64,000 nt of DNA, taken from Chlorokybus atmophyticus (Eukaryota > Plantae > Mesostigma and Chlorokybus algae). The position numbers and the translations under genes were made by a program. Location of the stretch: assembly GCA_009103225.1 (NCBI GenBank), contig RHPI01002699.1:286578-350577 (forward strand), written 5' to 3'. The notes beneath the pieces are model-generated. The model saw only the letters and a list, made by a program, of their open reading frames with translations. It had not been told where the DNA came from and did no database searches. Within the stretch, counting starts at the first letter, position 1. Each line of letters opens with the position of its first letter. Of the stretch, positions 14,103 to 22,374 are shown in pieces.

Positions 14103-14579
14103 CGTCGTCAACGACGACAGCAATGACAAGAAAAACGAGCACAACAACGACAGCTACGACACACCTCAGCTGTCAAGCAGCGCTCTGTACCAGACCAGAG
14201 CGGCGGAGCTAACAATAGACTGCACTGCCTAATCTATACCGTACAGCTGGTTCCACCGCTCAAAGACCAGCTGTCATTGGTCTCTCGCATCGCCTACTCG
14301 TACTGATTCAAGTCAACCTCGTGACCATGTTCCGCCTCCTCCTCCTTGTCGTCGTCCTCCGCCGCCACCGCCGGCGCAGCATAGGCCGCTGAGCTTGCCC
14401 GTTAGGTGACCCGGTGTTGAGTGCCTGGGACTTAGTTCACTCCAAGGTACACACAATTGAACTACTAAAGCATGACTGGTGATTCAAGTTTGACGCTTCA
14501 CTCATGGGTAGAATAAATTAGCTCGTAACTTGCGAGAGGTGTACTCTGGCGTCAAGTGCTACGTGTCAGCGCCACAGCG

Positions 14580-16920
14580 ATGGCGGCGGCGTTGTCAGTG
14601 GCGGCATGCATGGGGTTGGGGGCATTGCAGGTCAGGATCCAGGGGCCCAGACACGTGTCGCGCTCGCAGAACCGGCTGCAGCTGAAGACGCAGCAGCTGT
14701 GCCGTCGCCGCTGCGCTGTCACTAGCTGCCAGCTGGCTGGGCCTCAGCCGCCACCTGTCAGCACCAATGCCGTCAGCGATGTCGCTGAGGCCGTCTCCGA
14801 CATCGCTGACGGGGTCGCTGGAGGGGTTCAGGAAGCTAAGGCAGCCGTCGCAGCTGTAGCGGACGTTGACATGCGGCAGCTGAGAAGGTGAGGTAAGGGT
14901 GCATTGCCAAATGCACACACATACACATGCGCACACATACACGCACACAACATTCGCACACGCACATGCATATGCACATGCACGCCAACCGAGTTTGTTT
15001 CTCTCTTAATCTGCTGTCAACTTGAAGCCTTGCTTGTTAGTTTCCAGCATTGGAGATGGCTAATAAGCATGCAATGCAGCCATGTGTGAACATGCGTGCT
15101 TGCAACTATCCTACAGCTTTTATGTCACTGCTTGTGTCAACACTGCAGGTCGCATCGCTCATACAGACATCTATGTCGACAGTACTATGCTGCGCAGTAA
15201 CATAGACGGTGTGTCACAGCAAATACATAATGTACAACAACACAGAACAGTCGAATTCACGACTCTATGTCAATATCACCCAGGTTTTTGCTAGCTTCTG
15301 CTACATTATTATCTTCTCAAGCGAGTGCTTTTGGTGGTGCAAGCCTTATACCACACTGTCCTGACACTACAAGGACAGTGTTTGTGGTTGACCTGGCTGA
15401 TTGGTGCTTCACCAATCGAAGCGACCTGCATGTTGTTGTTTGCCGTGAGACACATACATGCACAGGCATTGCACTGGCGCGCGCACGCGCAGAAGTAGTG
15501 CGCGCTCATGCTCGGGCACACCTGCGCTCACGCACGCACGTACACGCGTGCGTGACGGTATGCACGTATTTGCACAGGCACCGCCCACCCACGCATGCAT
15601 GCACGGAGAGCATCACGACCACACCAACCAACAACAACCACAGTGTGCTGATTGTCACCATGCCCACTCCGTCGTGCCCACCCAGGTACCGCACGCTCCT
15701 CGCGCCCTTCTTCGAGCGCGAGACTGTCCTCACGCCCCTCGCGGATGGCGTCTGGGCGCTCGAGCAGCCAGCCGGACTCTTCGGCATCGATTTTGGTAAA
15801 CGACGGCAGTTTGGTGTTTGCAGTTAATTAATGTCTTGTGTTACACGCGTGCATACATTTGTTGTGCTTGTTGGATCATTCTCATGCAAGCGGTTGCTTC
15901 TACCAGGTCTTCGCATGGTGGCTGTGAAGCTTGCTGATGGCTCCCTAGCCCTTATCAACCCGGTAGGTAAGGCACGCCTATTGCAGCGCTTCAGCTATGC
16001 TTGTTGGCTTCCATAATCACCCAAACATCCTCACCACGCAACTGCTATGGTTGCGCCATTGCAACATCTACGGTCTATCCATACATTTGTCTTGAGCACA
16101 AGTGTTATTGTTGTCTCTGCAGCATTGACAGAGGAGTGCAAGCAGCAGTTAGCTTCTCTCTCCTCGCACATCTCTCACCTCCTCATCCTCAACACCAACA
16201 TCGAGCACCGTTACTTCGCTTGCGACTACACATCCACATATTCCAACATAACTATCTCCGCCCCCGAGCCGTTCCTCTCTTCTCCACCCAAAGAGCTTCC
16301 CCGCGTCAACTACGCCCTAACCAACATGCCGAAGGAGTTGAAAGACAAGTTTGATGTGGCTGTGTTGAAAGTTGATGCGTTTGAAGAGTGCGTGCTGTGG
16401 CATAAAGAGAGCGGGAGCGTGCTTGTGGGAGATGTGGTGATGCATGTGACGGAGAGGTTTGCGCGCAACGGGTTGTTCCGAAGCCTGCTGAAGGTGAGCA
16501 AAGCTGGGAACCAGGATATTTGTTCAAGTTGTCGTGTCATCAACCCTCACAAGCGACAAGCAAACACTCTCAAACCCAACATGCACATGCTTCATTAGCA
16601 GTGATGACTACTGTGTGCATGTCACTCACTCATGTGTTTCAGATTGTTGGGTTTTACGATCGGCCGGGAATATTGCCACCGCTCGATAAGTTGATGGTGC
16701 AAAAGCCGCACATGGAGCAAGCACAGGTAAGTATTTGGCACATGCAATGTTGTTGGGATAAGGTCGTTCATGTTCTAGTCACATTACGATTGTGTGTCAA
16801 CAGGTTGCGGTGAGACACATGGCCACATGGGACATCACAAGGTGGGTGCCTGGCCATGGTGAAGTTGTGGAGGACAATGCTGCAGAGTTGTTCAAGAAAG
16901 AGTTTGCTGCTTTGCTGTAG
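14580..16920 (+). CDS. Plastid-targeted DUF4336-like (metallo-beta-lactamase-fold-like) protein; multi-exon
   Basis: Transit peptide, then DGVWALEQP, LRMVAVKLADGSLALINPV, ECVLWHKESGSVLVGD and WDITRWVPGHG, resembling DUF4336 motifs as recalled. Confidence 0.7.
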
Positions 16921-17315
16921 AGTGGGTTTGCTTAGTGTGATTATTTTGAGTTTGCTACAAGTGGTGTAAATCAGCTGCTATAGCTGTTTGTGGTAGCACC
17001 TGTGTGCAATAGCACGACAAACCTATCAATAAGACCAATGTGTACATGTCGTGTGTTGGCGAACCAATTGTTGTGTGTATGTAGGAGGTTGGGGAACCAA
17101 CAGCTGGTGTGTACAACAAATACACCGTGGCATTGCTCACGTGCTTGTCCAAACAAGGATGACATAAAGGCTGTCCATGGAATCAGATTAAGTACAGGTG
17201 AATGTTGACTAGAACTAAAAACCGGTACAAGAATGGAGCAAAACATGCTAAGAAATTATGATGGTACAGGGAGCTTGTGTGTTTTTACAGGTGTGCTGCT
17301 GCATCATCATCATCA

Positions 17316-19059
17316 TCAAAGCTCAAACTCTGCTGGGTTGATGCCGGCAGCATTGCACGCCTCCTTCACAATCTTCTTTTCTTTCTTGTCGAAATTGCCG
17401 TCTGCTCCGCCGATGACTATGCCAACCTGTTCCATGGCAGTGACAGTCAACACCAAGACGTGTAACATATCCCTGCATATGCGTGCAAACTGTGATTGTG
17501 GTGTGCGTGACATTACAGACGGTTGCCTTCATGTGCTATGCAGACATGTGCACATGCATGCAGGCAGGCTGTGACAATAGCAACTGTGTTGCGTATGCGC
17601 GTAACATACAAGTGAATATCGCATATACACATGCAGATGTAATACCTGTATAACCGCGCGCGCCTGCTCAGGCTTCTTCCTCAACTTGCCGACAAGCTGA
17701 AGAAGCTCAATAGACCCAAACTGCGACAACATGATGGTGTAATACACCAAAACAACTCTCCCCCCCCCCCCACCCACCCACACCCACACCCACACTCTCC
17801 ACGCGCACGCGCACACACACACGCACAAACCCACCTTATGCTGCCACGTCACGCTGCCATCAACAACAGACACAACATTCTGCACAAAGCCACATCCCCC
17901 CCTCTCACCTCGAAGTCCCTTTCCAATTTGTCGCAGTACGCCTCGTACTTGGCTCTCAGGTCCTCCAAGTTGAACACTTTGAGCGCGTCGTTGCTGACGA
18001 TGAAGGCGGCCGTCTTGCGACGCTCCGACGCGTCGATCGTGCCGTCGGCCGCGGCGACCAGGGCGCACATCGCCATCGCGGCCTGGGTGGGTGAGTGGGG
18101 GTGCGTGTCGGTGGGGGTGCGGGCGTGAGTACACGCGTGTGCGCACGTGTGCATGGGTGTGTGCGTGTGTGCACGCATATGTTGTGTGGAAGTCAGAAGT
18201 TCGTTTACTCGTTTAATTTTATATTTTATATGCTGAGCTGTGCAAGCAAGCGTAATTTATGCTGACAACAATGCTGGGTGCCAATATTGTGATGCATACA
18301 TGCTGTCAGTATGCAGTTTAATAGGAACTGTTGGCATTACTATATCAGTGTACTAAGAAGCCAACTCAGTACGAGAGAGAAAACTAATGCTTATGCCATT
18401 GTAATGAACCGTGTCCTGCCATGCGAATTGTCATAAACAGCACAAGTACAGTTCAGTGGTATCACAAGTATGATCGACCAGCACTAGCATTACCAGCCGT
18501 TGACATAAACGACTCACGTCAATCATGCTGTGTGCATGCTGGTACATGCTGCATTGAGCAAGAGCCATGCATGCATTGACAACAATCCTGCTTCAAGTGC
18601 AACATGCCACACAACAACAACAACAACAACGCCATGCAACACGCCATATGCCATATTGAGCAACACACACTCACGTCGGCAAACTCCTGGTTGTTGTATT
18701 TGGCGATGGTGTTCTGCAGATTCAGTCCCAGTTTGGGCAGGTTGTTCTTGAAGTCCGCCCACAGGCCCTTCAGGTTGGGCTGGGCCGAGACCACCACCGG
18801 AGACCTCCTGCGGGAGGAGAGGCGGAGAGGGGAGGACGACACCGGCTTGATGGGAAGAGACCTGGGCAATGTAAGTGATGAGAAGGAGGAGAAGGAGGAG
18901 AAGGAGGGGGAGGAGGAGGAGGATAGCCATGAGTACAGTGCCCTGCATAGCTTACCTGAAGCTGCGACGGCCGTCGCCGAGTGTTGCGCGTGTTGCATTT
19001 ACGCGTGTAGGCTGAGTAAGGGCGGCTGAGCATACCACCATCATCGTCGCTGCCGCCAT
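17316..19059 (-). CDS. Plastid-targeted TerB-family (tellurite-resistance) protein of actinobacterial type; 5 exons (19059-18956, 18861-18675, 18082-17909, 17720-17646, 17426-17316)
   Basis: Spliced product is a transit peptide plus ..EFADAAMAMCALVAAADGTIDASERRK..FEFGSIELLQLVGKLRKKPEQARAVIQVGIVIGGADGNFDKKEKKIVKEACNAAGINPAEFEL*. It has two TerB helical repeats (AADG..D..E, GADG.FD..E), and all junctions are GT-AG and in phase. Confidence 0.85.
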
Positions 19060-19815
19060 GGTCGCCAACGACGATGCCGACAATAAGGCGGCGAACAAAG
19101 ACTGTCAGCCGTCGATGGGATGAAGGATTGGATAGCTACAATCAGACGGTGTTGCGTATAATCAGCGTACTGTACACGTGGCAGTACCGAAAGCCTCCGA
19201 CTATCAGCATCCGACGCTTTGAAGCCCCTTGAGTTGTGCTGCTTGTGCTCCTTACGCACAAGAAGCACAACGAGCTTGGTGACTGTGACGCCACTACCAG
19301 TTGGTATCTGGCAATTGTAAACTGGTAGTGGCAATGGCCATTTGCTACACTGATGGCTTGGACGGGCAGTGCCAGTGGCAGACTGGTACTGGTACTGGCG
19401 CTGGCTGGTGGCAGGTGTCGCTTCGTGTCCAGCACGTGCCAGGAACAGTTACTGTAAAGATTTGAAATCGCAGAAACATTGAGAAACGGCTCCCGCGGAC
19501 CGCAATCCTCGGTCAGGTTAACCAAGACAAGTGAACTCGCTCAACAATGGCTGTAACTGCACAAATTACCGTTAAGCTTACTCAACAACTAGCCCAAGGG
19601 GCAGCAGTTTAACTTCAACAAGTGCCTCGAGCGTTCAACTTCAACGAAGTCCAATTCAGGCTGAGTTATTCAGCTGACAATGCAGTTGCGATTTGACTGG
19701 CTTCGTGGAGTTTGACAGCTTTCGAAAAATCATAACGGCTTCTTCGGTGGGGACGTCGGCGAGGTGGCCGGCGGCGTAGCTGCTGTATTTTGTTGCATTA
19801 TTATTGTCGTTGAGG

Positions 19816-19824
19816 TTAGGGTTT
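19816..19824 (-). promoter_or_regulatory. Telo-box (AAACCCTAA on the minus strand) just upstream of the ICME ATG
   Basis: TTAGGGTTT about 15 nt before ATG 19840. Confidence 0.35.
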
Positions 19825-19839
19825 GAGAGCAGGGCGGCG

Positions 19840-22374
19840 ATGGCCGCGGCGGCGGCCGTGATGTTGGCTGCGGGGGTGGAGCTGATCACCGTCGGAGAGG
19901 AGGACGGCAATGGCCACGGCAGCGGCGGGGGCGGCGGCGGCGCTGGGATCAGCAGCGCTCAGGCTCAGCAGGCGCTGAAGAGGCGGCAGTACAAGCTGGC
20001 TAGGTTGACTGCCAGGCTTGCTGCCTCAGGAGGTGGAGGAGGAGGAGGAGGAGGTGGAGGCGGAGCGTTGACAGGGGCGGCGTGCTGCTCCGCCACTGGG
20101 GTGGCGTCGCCGGCATGGCTGCCTAGGGGCAGCAGCTTCGGCAGCTCTTCCAGCCTGGACGGAGTGATCCAGCCGCCTGGCAGGCGTCAGGGAAACCTCT
20201 CCCGTCCGCCGTCGCCCTGCTCGACCAGCAGCGATGCTGGCGGTGATGAGGCTGGCGTCGGCCTCCTCCGTCCCCTTGTCCGTGGCGCCCGCAGCGTTGT
20301 TGCTGAGCTTGTGCACTGCGTCCTTGAGACAGTCCTACTGGGCCGCCTTGCTGTCCGCCTAGCTCGCGCCCTTGGCCTGGGCGCTCAGTGGATTCGCAAG
20401 CTTGGAGCGCTGCTCATTTATGCCACACTGCTTACGCCAGGCTTCTTGCAGGTGAGTTAGACATTCGCATTGCTAGGTGGACATGTGCAAGACACAGTAA
20501 TACTATCACTAACGAAGAGTGATACATTGCACATTGCAAGCAAATCTTCTCCGAGGAAATGGTACTGATGTTGTGGTTTGCACAAGTTCATGCATCAACA
20601 TATGAGATGTGCTCTCGCGGACAGATGCTTAACTGCGTGAGTGCATGTGTGCTTGCCAAACCAGTGCGTAGTAATGATATGCTAAGAGCCACACGCACGA
20701 GAGTGTGTTCATGCGTGTTTTTGCACGCGTGTTCTGTATTTTGGGTGCTGGTTTGTGCGCCCACGCACTCCACTATCACCCATGCACATGTGTCTGCTCA
20801 TCACTTCCGTATACTGTTCTGTGTCATGTGCACACTGTTTATTGACATGTTGGGTTTTATTGTTCAGGTGTTGGCGTTCTTTCTGTCTTCTCCACGAGTG
20901 CTGAAGTCAGTTGTGTACGGCCCAAAGCCGCGCAATCGTCTCGATCTCTTTCTGCCACCGGAGGAGGAAGTCGAGGGCGGTCCTTCACCGCAACAGAGCC
21001 AGCATCCGAAGCCTGTTGTGGTGTTTCTAACAGGCGGCGCCTGGATTATTGGTAAGATAATGCATGCGGGAGTGTTTGCAGGCTGCAGTTACTGTATGCG
21101 TCTTAAGCGCGTGCAAGCCAAGCCGCATGGCGCTTCAGCACAGCAGTATCCAACTGATGCTATAGCAACACAGTAACAGTATTTACGTGTGTGTACTGCA
21201 GGGTACAAAGGATGGGGCGCATTGCTTGGCAAGGTACAACATACCCATGCACCCAAACGCACACACAGGCACATGCACATGCACATGCGTGAATGCACAC
21301 TCACACAGACGGGCGCGTACACACACAAGCACGCGCACCTTACAAGCACACATGGAAGCACACACAGACTCAGGCACACATACGTATCAGACGCACGCAT
21401 GCACATGTGCATGTAAGAACCGGCATGTTTCGCACTAACCATAACGTGACATTGAAGTTGTAGCAACAAAGCTCTCCCAACTTGCAGGTGTTGTCTGAGA
21501 GAGGAGTCATCGTCGCATGTTTAGACTACAGGAACTTCCCTCAAGGCACCATTTCAGATATGGTTGAGGACGTCTCCTGTGGCCTGCAATGGGTCCTGGA
21601 GAACGCGCATTGTTATGGCGGCGACACTTCACAGGTCAGCACGTACAACCACATTGGTGATACAGATGGATATGTGGACATGTGTGCTTGTGTGCTCGCT
21701 ATAAAGCTTGAATTGACAGAAGTGTATCACTGTAGGTGACGATTGTGGGGCAGTCTGCAGGCGCCCACTTGGGCGCCACAGCTTTACTTCAGCAGGCAGA
21801 AAGGGAGTTGAGGGGTGAGAGCGTTAGCTGGGGTTGTGCCAACATACACGCCTTCATAGGCGTCTCCGGTCCTTATGATCTCGCTGGCATCATTGACCAT
21901 TTCGACAAGCGCGGGCTGTCGCGTTCCGTATTCTTGTCCATTATGGAAGGGGAGGAGTCTCTTGCAGCCTTCTCGCCAACATGCATTGTGCAGGCGCAGT
22001 TGTCCTCTCACCTCGCAAACTGGCAAGACCGCATGTCGACACAACAACTGGAGCCGCTGATGGCGCGCATACTCCCCCCGTGCATGCTACTACACGGCAC
22101 ATCCGACTCATCCATCCCATGGCAAAGCTCTGAAGAGTTTGCTGCGGCTTTGCAGTCGATCGGTGCACCGGTCTGGGTGAAGTATTATGAGGGAAAGACC
22201 CACACCGATCCCATTGTGGAAATACCGTTGTTGGGTGAGAGGGACGAGCTCGTGGAAGACATCCTCAGAGTTGTGTGCGGGGATGCGATGATGGAAGAGT
22301 ACAGCCAACGCCCTGGTAGACGATACGTGCCTGACTTTTTGGTTAACTGGGCACGCAAAATATGTCCCTTCTGA
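19840..22374 (+). CDS. ICME: Isoprenylcysteine alpha-carbonyl methylesterase (ICME/PCME-like); multi-exon
   Basis: YGPKPRNRLDLFLP, PVVVFLTGGAWIIGYKGWG, DYRNFPQGTISDMVED, nucleophile elbow GQSAGAHL, LLHGTSD and YEGKTHTD, all typical of plant ICME. Confidence 0.88.

Follow-up and report, generated by a model that had tools for sequence, protein, structure and literature searches.

Gene structure and genomic setting

The window, by which we mean the whole 64-kb stretch of Chlorokybus atmophyticus DNA that was analyzed, contains a TerB gene of five exons on the minus strand (19059..17316), exactly where a first-pass annotation made from the sequence alone had placed it, and the sequence strings quoted in that annotation are present. 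All four introns start with GT and end with AG, and their phases (2, 0, 0, and 0) keep a single frame that encodes a predicted product of approximately 216 residues (Table 1). The exon borders agree exactly with a collinear alignment to the TerB proteins of bacteria; the splice junctions, including the acceptor of intron 2, are predicted from sequence signals and homology. Several low-complexity tracts were seen in the noncoding parts, including simple repeats of the GAGGAG/GAAGGA type in intron 1 (18870-18925), a C/CA-rich tract in intron 3 (17755-17830), and a short (CAT)n run directly 3' of the stop codon (17296-17315).

Table 1. Exons and introns of the TerB gene, its two flanking genes, and the internal acceptor used by the public gene model
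Feature	Position	Strand	Description
DUF4336 gene	14556..16920 (approximate limits)	+	Multi-exon; convergent with TerB
Exon 5 (E5)	17316..17426	-	TerB residues 116-151; second ADGxxDxxE motif, GGADGNFDKKE; TGA at 17318..17316
Intron 4	17427..17645	-	219 nt, GT..AG, phase 0
Exon 4 (E4)	17646..17720	-	TerB residues 91-115 (FGSIELLQ...ARAVIQ)
Intron 3	17721..17908	-	188 nt, GT..AG, phase 0
Exon 3 (E3)	17909..18082	-	TerB residues 33-90; first ADGxxDxxE motif, AAADGTIDASE
Internal AG	18023..18024	-	Inside exon 3; used as acceptor by the public model P0003, removing AAMAMCALVAAADGTIDASE
Intron 2	18083..18674	-	592 nt, GT..AG, phase 0
Exon 2 (E2)	18675..18861	-	Remainder of the leader to ~18771; TerB residues 1-32 (bacterial numbering) from ~18770
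Intron 1	18862..18955	-	94 nt, GT..AG; within the leader
Exon 1 (E1)	18956..19059	-	ATG at 19059; 34 codons + 2 bases of leader; phase-2 donor GT at 18955-18954
Alpha/beta-hydrolase gene	19548..22374 (approximate limits)	+	Multi-exon (BD-FAE/Abhydrolase_3); divergent from TerB

The TerB gene lies between a DUF4336 gene and an alpha/beta-hydrolase gene, and further on is a gene for an oxysterol-binding protein that is also split into several exons. The start codons of the TerB and hydrolase genes are approximately 490 bp apart, and this interval may be a shared promoter region. No TerD, TerC, or TerA/Z/E gene was found in association with TerB within the window, as is expected for a eukaryotic gene. 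The GC content at third codon positions is 0.78 for the TerB part versus 0.64 for the neighboring hydrolase, whereas the introns of the TerB gene have a GC content of 0.47-0.58 and the window as a whole 0.50.

High similarity to bacterial proteins, as described below, is what one would see if the gene were a bacterial contaminant or an assembly artifact. However, its reading frame is broken by four GT-AG introns, its leader exon is specific to the eukaryote, multi-exon eukaryotic genes stand on both sides of it on one 64-kb stretch, and the public Chlat1 annotation contains it as well. The intron structure thus effectively refutes contamination, whose probability we consider close to nil, and the earlier description of the locus as an integrated, intron-bearing nuclear gene holds. 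Two sequencing runs of the same organism, both far smaller than a genome, contain 0.32 and 0.26 of the sampled words from 17100-19400, an interval of which exons make up approximately 0.28. The word shares are close to the exon share and fit spliced transcripts, although such a fit is not proof.

TerB domain, N-terminal leader, and public gene model

The mature part of the product is a complete, canonical, single-domain TerB of the type encoded in bacterial ter (tellurite/stress) clusters. The Pfam TerB family (PF05099, gathering cut-off of 24.4 bits) matches exon 3 (8.5e-11, 42.6 bits, profile positions 3-54) and exon 5 (1e-6, 29.5 bits, profile positions 81-114), both above the cut-off, and the same family is precomputed for the public Chlorokybus model (P0003). 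A search of NCBIfam with the separate exon peptides gave no match, the pieces being too short for whole-protein models. In BLASTP searches with each exon and in tblastn, the exon peptides are collinear, without gaps, on 151-aa bacterial TerB proteins and cover residues 2-151: the last 31 residues of exon 2 (E2 32-62) align to bacterial residues 2-32, and exons 3, 4, and 5 to the ranges given in Table 1. Identity to bacterial TerB reaches 80% in exon 4 and 78% in exon 5, and residues 32-62 of exon 2 are 46% identical to the Mesostigma protein described below. The similarity is far beyond chance, given that the tblastn E value is 1e-22 for exon 3 alone. When the Mesostigma and bacterial proteins were compared with the window by tblastn (18143-18178 masked), the same four segments were recovered and no second TerB copy was found.

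The sole match in the PDB is 2JXU, at 5.6e-14 for the public Chlorokybus model and, end to end, at 2.7e-22 for the Mesostigma protein; residues 35-74 of the 2JXU chain match exon 3 and residues 51-150 match P0003. Both ADGxxDxxE motifs are intact in the exon model, one in each internal repeat. The first-pass identification of a canonical TerB with bacterial nearest relatives is thus borne out by approximately 60% identity over the last ~151 codons, together with the PF05099 matches and the end-to-end alignment, and the Streptomyces string that it cited matches a real open reading frame (ORF) of Streptomyces boluensis (L021).

Ahead of the equivalent of the bacterial Met1 is a leader of 65 residues, made up of exon 1, the codon divided by intron 1, and residues 1-30 of exon 2. 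Since intron 1 lies inside it, the leader appears to have been built from host sequence. Its first 64 residues (P0003:1-64, ending at residue 29 of exon 2) include 10 Ser, 9 Arg, 8 Ala, 7 Val, 6 Pro, and 5 Thr, with one Asp as the only acidic residue and one Lys, which agrees with the Ser/Arg-rich, transit-peptide-like leader proposed earlier. The leader starts with MAAAT, its first 18 residues are uncharged, and a VVVSAQ stretch lies near the junction with the TerB domain. From these features we infer that it resembles an organellar presequence, most likely a plastid transit peptide. The N-terminus of the neighboring DUF4336 gene (14556-16920, plus strand) is Ala/Ser/Arg-rich and organellar-leader-like as well.

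It is also conceivable that the TerB is real and that its leader directs it to mitochondria, or that the protein remains in the cytosol. The plastid and mitochondrial presequences of green algae overlap in composition, the leader is rich in Arg (9/64), and Arg occupies positions 6 and 8 of the short extension of the Mesostigma protein. However, an uncharged start, Ser and Thr, Pro, and a VVVSAQ-like stretch are more typical of stromal transit peptides, and the Chlorokybus leader has 18 uncharged residues from a MAAAT start, Ser plus Thr at 15/64, Pro at 6/64, and VVVSAQ near the junction. We therefore regard a mitochondrial or cytosolic location as somewhat unlikely and prefer the plastid.

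The gene is already represented by a public model, P0003 (eukprot jgi/Chlat1/3587/Chrsp234S03578), of 196 aa. This model shares its N-terminus with exon 1 and equals our exon model except that it is without AAMAMCALVAAADGTIDASE, the first 20 residues of exon 3, because an AG inside exon 3 serves as the acceptor of intron 2; with this choice, the first ADGxxDxxE motif is missing. The upstream AG at 18084-18083 is preceded by a C-rich tract, and its use restores the first acidic motif as well as the alignment to Pfam, 2JXU, Mesostigma, and every bacterial TerB, all of which make it the better acceptor. We think that the public model is mis-spliced, judging from these sequence features; it is possible that both acceptors (18084-18083 and 18024-18023) are in use. 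The exon model would thus correct a public model in which half of the predicted metal-binding site is missing.

Distribution, phylogeny, and origin

With exon 3 as the query, phmmer was run exhaustively against 1.84 billion cluster representatives and returned 145 clusters at E <= 0.001. Nearly all of those with a match away from the N-terminus or a length above the canonical one were inspected, and all inspected clusters except P0003 are of bacterial type. The longer clusters, considered as eukaryotic candidates, were rejected: they are bacterial fusions (TerD-TerB, NUDIX-TerB, HTH-TerB, and tandem TerB), over-extended ORFs of high-GC bacteria, or metagenome and Logan contigs with nothing eukaryotic. 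A word search with P0003 gave 444 relatives, and a profile built from this protein and its Mesostigma counterpart gave 2944; eukaryotes are represented among the top 120 of either list only by Chlorokybus and Mesostigma viride (Mv03703, also P0195 and eukprot jgi/Mesvir1/4010). In the profile search, the two algae scored 384 and 358 bits, followed by bacterial proteins of 151 residues at 234 bits. The first-pass annotation had listed the presence of TerB in other streptophytes and chlorophytes as a check; among other eukaryotes, TerB is thus limited to Mesostigma in the databases searched, whose eukaryotic sampling is uneven, and in the same protein searches (145 clusters; best 120 of 444 and of 2944) TerB was not found in streptophytes nearer land plants.

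A scan of bacterial and archaeal genomes, one for each species, with exon 3 as the query yielded 249 confirmed relatives. The best 80 of these are 53-69% identical to exon 3 across all 58 residues, and nearly every ORF at these 80 loci has a length of exactly 151 residues. Many of the best 80 belong to Actinomycetota (Rhodococcus, Streptomyces, Frankia, and Pseudonocardia), in a genome collection in which actinobacterial species are heavily over-represented; no cyanobacterium is among them. Two loci that appeared to be cyanobacterial (L027 and L030) proved to be Rhodococcus loci mislabeled Cyanobacteriota through a genus-name collision in the origin table. A contig of 235 bp in a Psychrobacter proteolyticus assembly (L015) carries only a fragment of this TerB subtype, 66% identical to exon 3 and of uncertain origin. 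Among named proteins, a Microcoleus TerB (P0148), whose gene lies beside TerD genes, is among the top matches at 55-60% identity. Summed over the exons, identities are 92/149 for a Nitrospirae metagenome-assembled genome (MAG), the best genome, 88/146 for Abditibacterium, approximately 85/148 for Rhodococcus, and approximately 82/154 for Streptomyces.

The phylogeny was inferred with FastTree (339 rows) and with IQ-TREE under LG+C20+F+G4 PMSF (95 rows, 151 columns). In both trees, the Chlorokybus and Mesostigma proteins are sisters, with support of 93 (FastTree) and 98/90 (IQ-TREE). The algal pair is in turn sister to P0002 (98/79; IQ-TREE, 151 columns), a metagenomic protein from an 18-kb contig that also encodes StiP/PELOTA, a C-C lyase, three TerD proteins, and AIM24 and is a bacterial ter cluster. 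Next to this group are Deinococcus peraridilitoris, Deinobacterium chartae, and two further proteins (88/84). A separate clade comprises Streptomyces, Frankia, and Actinomadura, with a long stem (0.53) and support of 100/100 (IQ-TREE), the Rhodococcus TerBs form another, and Microcoleus, the only named cyanobacterial entry seen, falls in a neighboring clade of mixed phyla. Rather than to Streptomyces, the best tree points to TerBs like those of Deinococcota and of an uncultured bacterium. The alignment is short (151 columns), and neither a grouping of the algae with Streptomyces/Frankia (p = 0.208) nor one with Microcoleus (p = 0.405) was rejected by AU tests, so that any donor named from the tree is a candidate only.

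The two algal proteins also have five residues in common (K29, N46, L91, Y98, and S113, Mesostigma numbering), each present in less than 5% of 288 bacterial rows and two of them in 0/288. They are only 58% identical to each other, from which we take their split to be old, and each is approximately 60% identical to its best bacterial match. Both the 98/90 sisterhood and the shared rare residues support a single origin. The transfer of the gene from a bacterium to an alga before Chlorokybus and Mesostigma, which are sister lineages, diverged is likely, and a single transfer into their common ancestor is preferred as it requires the fewest events. In this reconstruction, TerB would have been taken once, before the divergence or earlier with later loss, and would then have gained four spliceosomal introns and a 65-residue, plastid-transit-like leader. 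Horizontal transfer from a bacterium, as the first-pass annotation had proposed, is supported, irrespective of the donor, by an intron-bearing nuclear gene that is patchy in eukaryotes and nested among bacterial TerBs in the tree. For the whole account, namely a functional nuclear TerB that was acquired once from a bacterium and gained introns and a leader, with plastid-type targeting and a metal role as its conditional parts, we estimate a probability of roughly 0.68.

That annotation had gone further, in describing the protein as Streptomyces-type and in suggesting a terrestrialization-type acquisition, and these parts are not supported. A donor like Streptomyces, a soil bacterium, with a role in terrestrial adaptation would agree with the many Actinomycetota among the best 80 of 249 genome matches, with the AU value of 0.208, and with the subaerial habit of Chlorokybus. 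Yet the abundance of actinobacterial matches comes from a collection weighted towards such species, Streptomyces TerBs are only ~53% identical, below the 57-62% of Nitrospirae, Abditibacterium, and Rhodococcus, and the long, fully supported stem keeps Streptomyces and Frankia away from the algae, which group with P0002 and Deinococcota. The terrestrial part is further weakened because Mesostigma is an aquatic flagellate and no match was found in streptophytes nearer land plants in the databases searched; for the same reasons, the gene does not bear on land-plant origins. We consider an actinobacterial donor with such a role improbable. Equally improbable, in our estimate, is inheritance from the cyanobacterial ancestor of the plastid, or from the green-plant ancestor, with loss in nearly all other Archaeplastida. 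The rank and TerD-cluster setting of the Microcoleus protein, the AU value of 0.405, and a leader that looks plastid-type speak for it; against it are the lack of cyanobacteria among the best 80 of 249 genome loci, the single named cyanobacterial entry in a clade of mixed phyla, and the lack of any other eukaryote in three protein searches (best 120 per word search), which would require many independent losses.

Independent transfers into Chlorokybus and into Mesostigma from similar bacteria could explain why the algal proteins (58%) are no closer to each other than each is to its best bacterial match (~60%) and why their N-terminal extensions are unequal in length. However, the sisterhood of the two proteins, the five shared residues, which few or none of the 288 bacterial rows have, and the sister relationship of the algae themselves all count against this scenario, and we judge it very improbable. 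A single bacterial acquisition thus remains our preferred reading.

Possible function and comparison with known systems

TerB is a stress protein widespread among bacteria, and even there its mechanism is unsettled; it is regarded as a peripheral membrane protein whose acidic motifs bind metal and which works with TerC, and TerD proteins bind calcium. The close bacterial relatives of the algal protein adjoin TerD genes and, in one case, also a Na/Ca exchanger. That case is a Deinococcales MAG (L003:8-4645), in which the TerB relative lies after two TerD genes and one gene of the Na/Ca-exchanger family and before an NT5C nucleotidase, a neighborhood that hints at a link between this TerB subtype and cation handling. 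In the Nitrospirae MAG whose TerB is most similar (L001:993-3357), the gene comes after one for a GmrSD-type restriction enzyme and one for a RiboL-PSP HEPN protein, which is a defense-island setting, not a ter operon.

Given that the acidic motifs are intact and that each algal protein is still ~60% identical to bacterial TerBs despite only 58% identity between the two, the TerB function has probably been retained. Once imported, the mature protein would adopt the all-helical TerB fold (2JXU), and its two ADGxxDxxE motifs would bind a divalent cation. It would associate peripherally with a membrane and act there with proteins that handle cations, for which the TerC-family protein of thylakoids is the obvious candidate in plastids, and its role would be the buffering or signaling of metal or oxidative stress. 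That a stromal TerB binds a divalent cation and, under stress, works together with TerC or with some other cation transporter is a tentative proposal, which we hold to be unlikely in this full form. Less likely again is the more specific version, in which the earliest-diverging streptophyte algae captured TerB, re-targeted it to the plastid, and put it to work with TerC in Mn/Ca handling or stress signaling.

If a plastid TerB does work with TerC, these algae would offer the first eukaryotic setting in which to study the long-unsolved TerB/TerC mechanism, and a plastid location would make them a simple system, with one TerB and no operon, for the role of TerB and its cooperation with TerC. A TerB copy kept, as it appears, by purifying selection in the two first-branching streptophyte lineages would also be a clean example of an ancient bacterium-to-alga transfer. 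The gene and its PF05099 annotation are already public; to the extent of the searches made, the literature apparently describes neither its origin nor its restriction to two algae nor the error in the model. No literature linking Chlorokybus with tellurite or TerB was found, a search for TerB and chloroplast returned only chloroplast-division papers unrelated to TerB, and the Chlorokybus/Mesostigma genome paper and its supplements mention neither horizontal gene transfer nor TerB.

Compared with bacterial TerB (PF05099; Klebsiella pneumoniae TerB, PDB 2JXU, 151-153 aa), the mature part of the algal protein has the same length and is collinear end to end, whereas the gene adds a nuclear location, four spliceosomal introns, and a 65-residue N-terminal leader, and has no ter genes next to it in the window, unlike the close bacterial relatives beside TerD genes. 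Its closest counterpart, Mesostigma viride Mv03703, is its sister in the tree and has the five rare residues in common with it, but is 58% identical and has, in its model, an N-terminal extension of ~17 residues compared to 65 in Chlorokybus. Another family of the ter cluster, plant and algal TerC works in plastids and is kept in the thylakoids of green plants (PMC4823308). It is a plausible partner of TerB, although the two are unrelated in fold and family. TerC is widespread in green plants, whereas this TerB seems to be restricted to two streptophyte algae that diverged early. Other bacterial-to-streptophyte transfers in the literature followed a similar course, in which a bacterial gene likewise turned nuclear, gained introns, and was kept.
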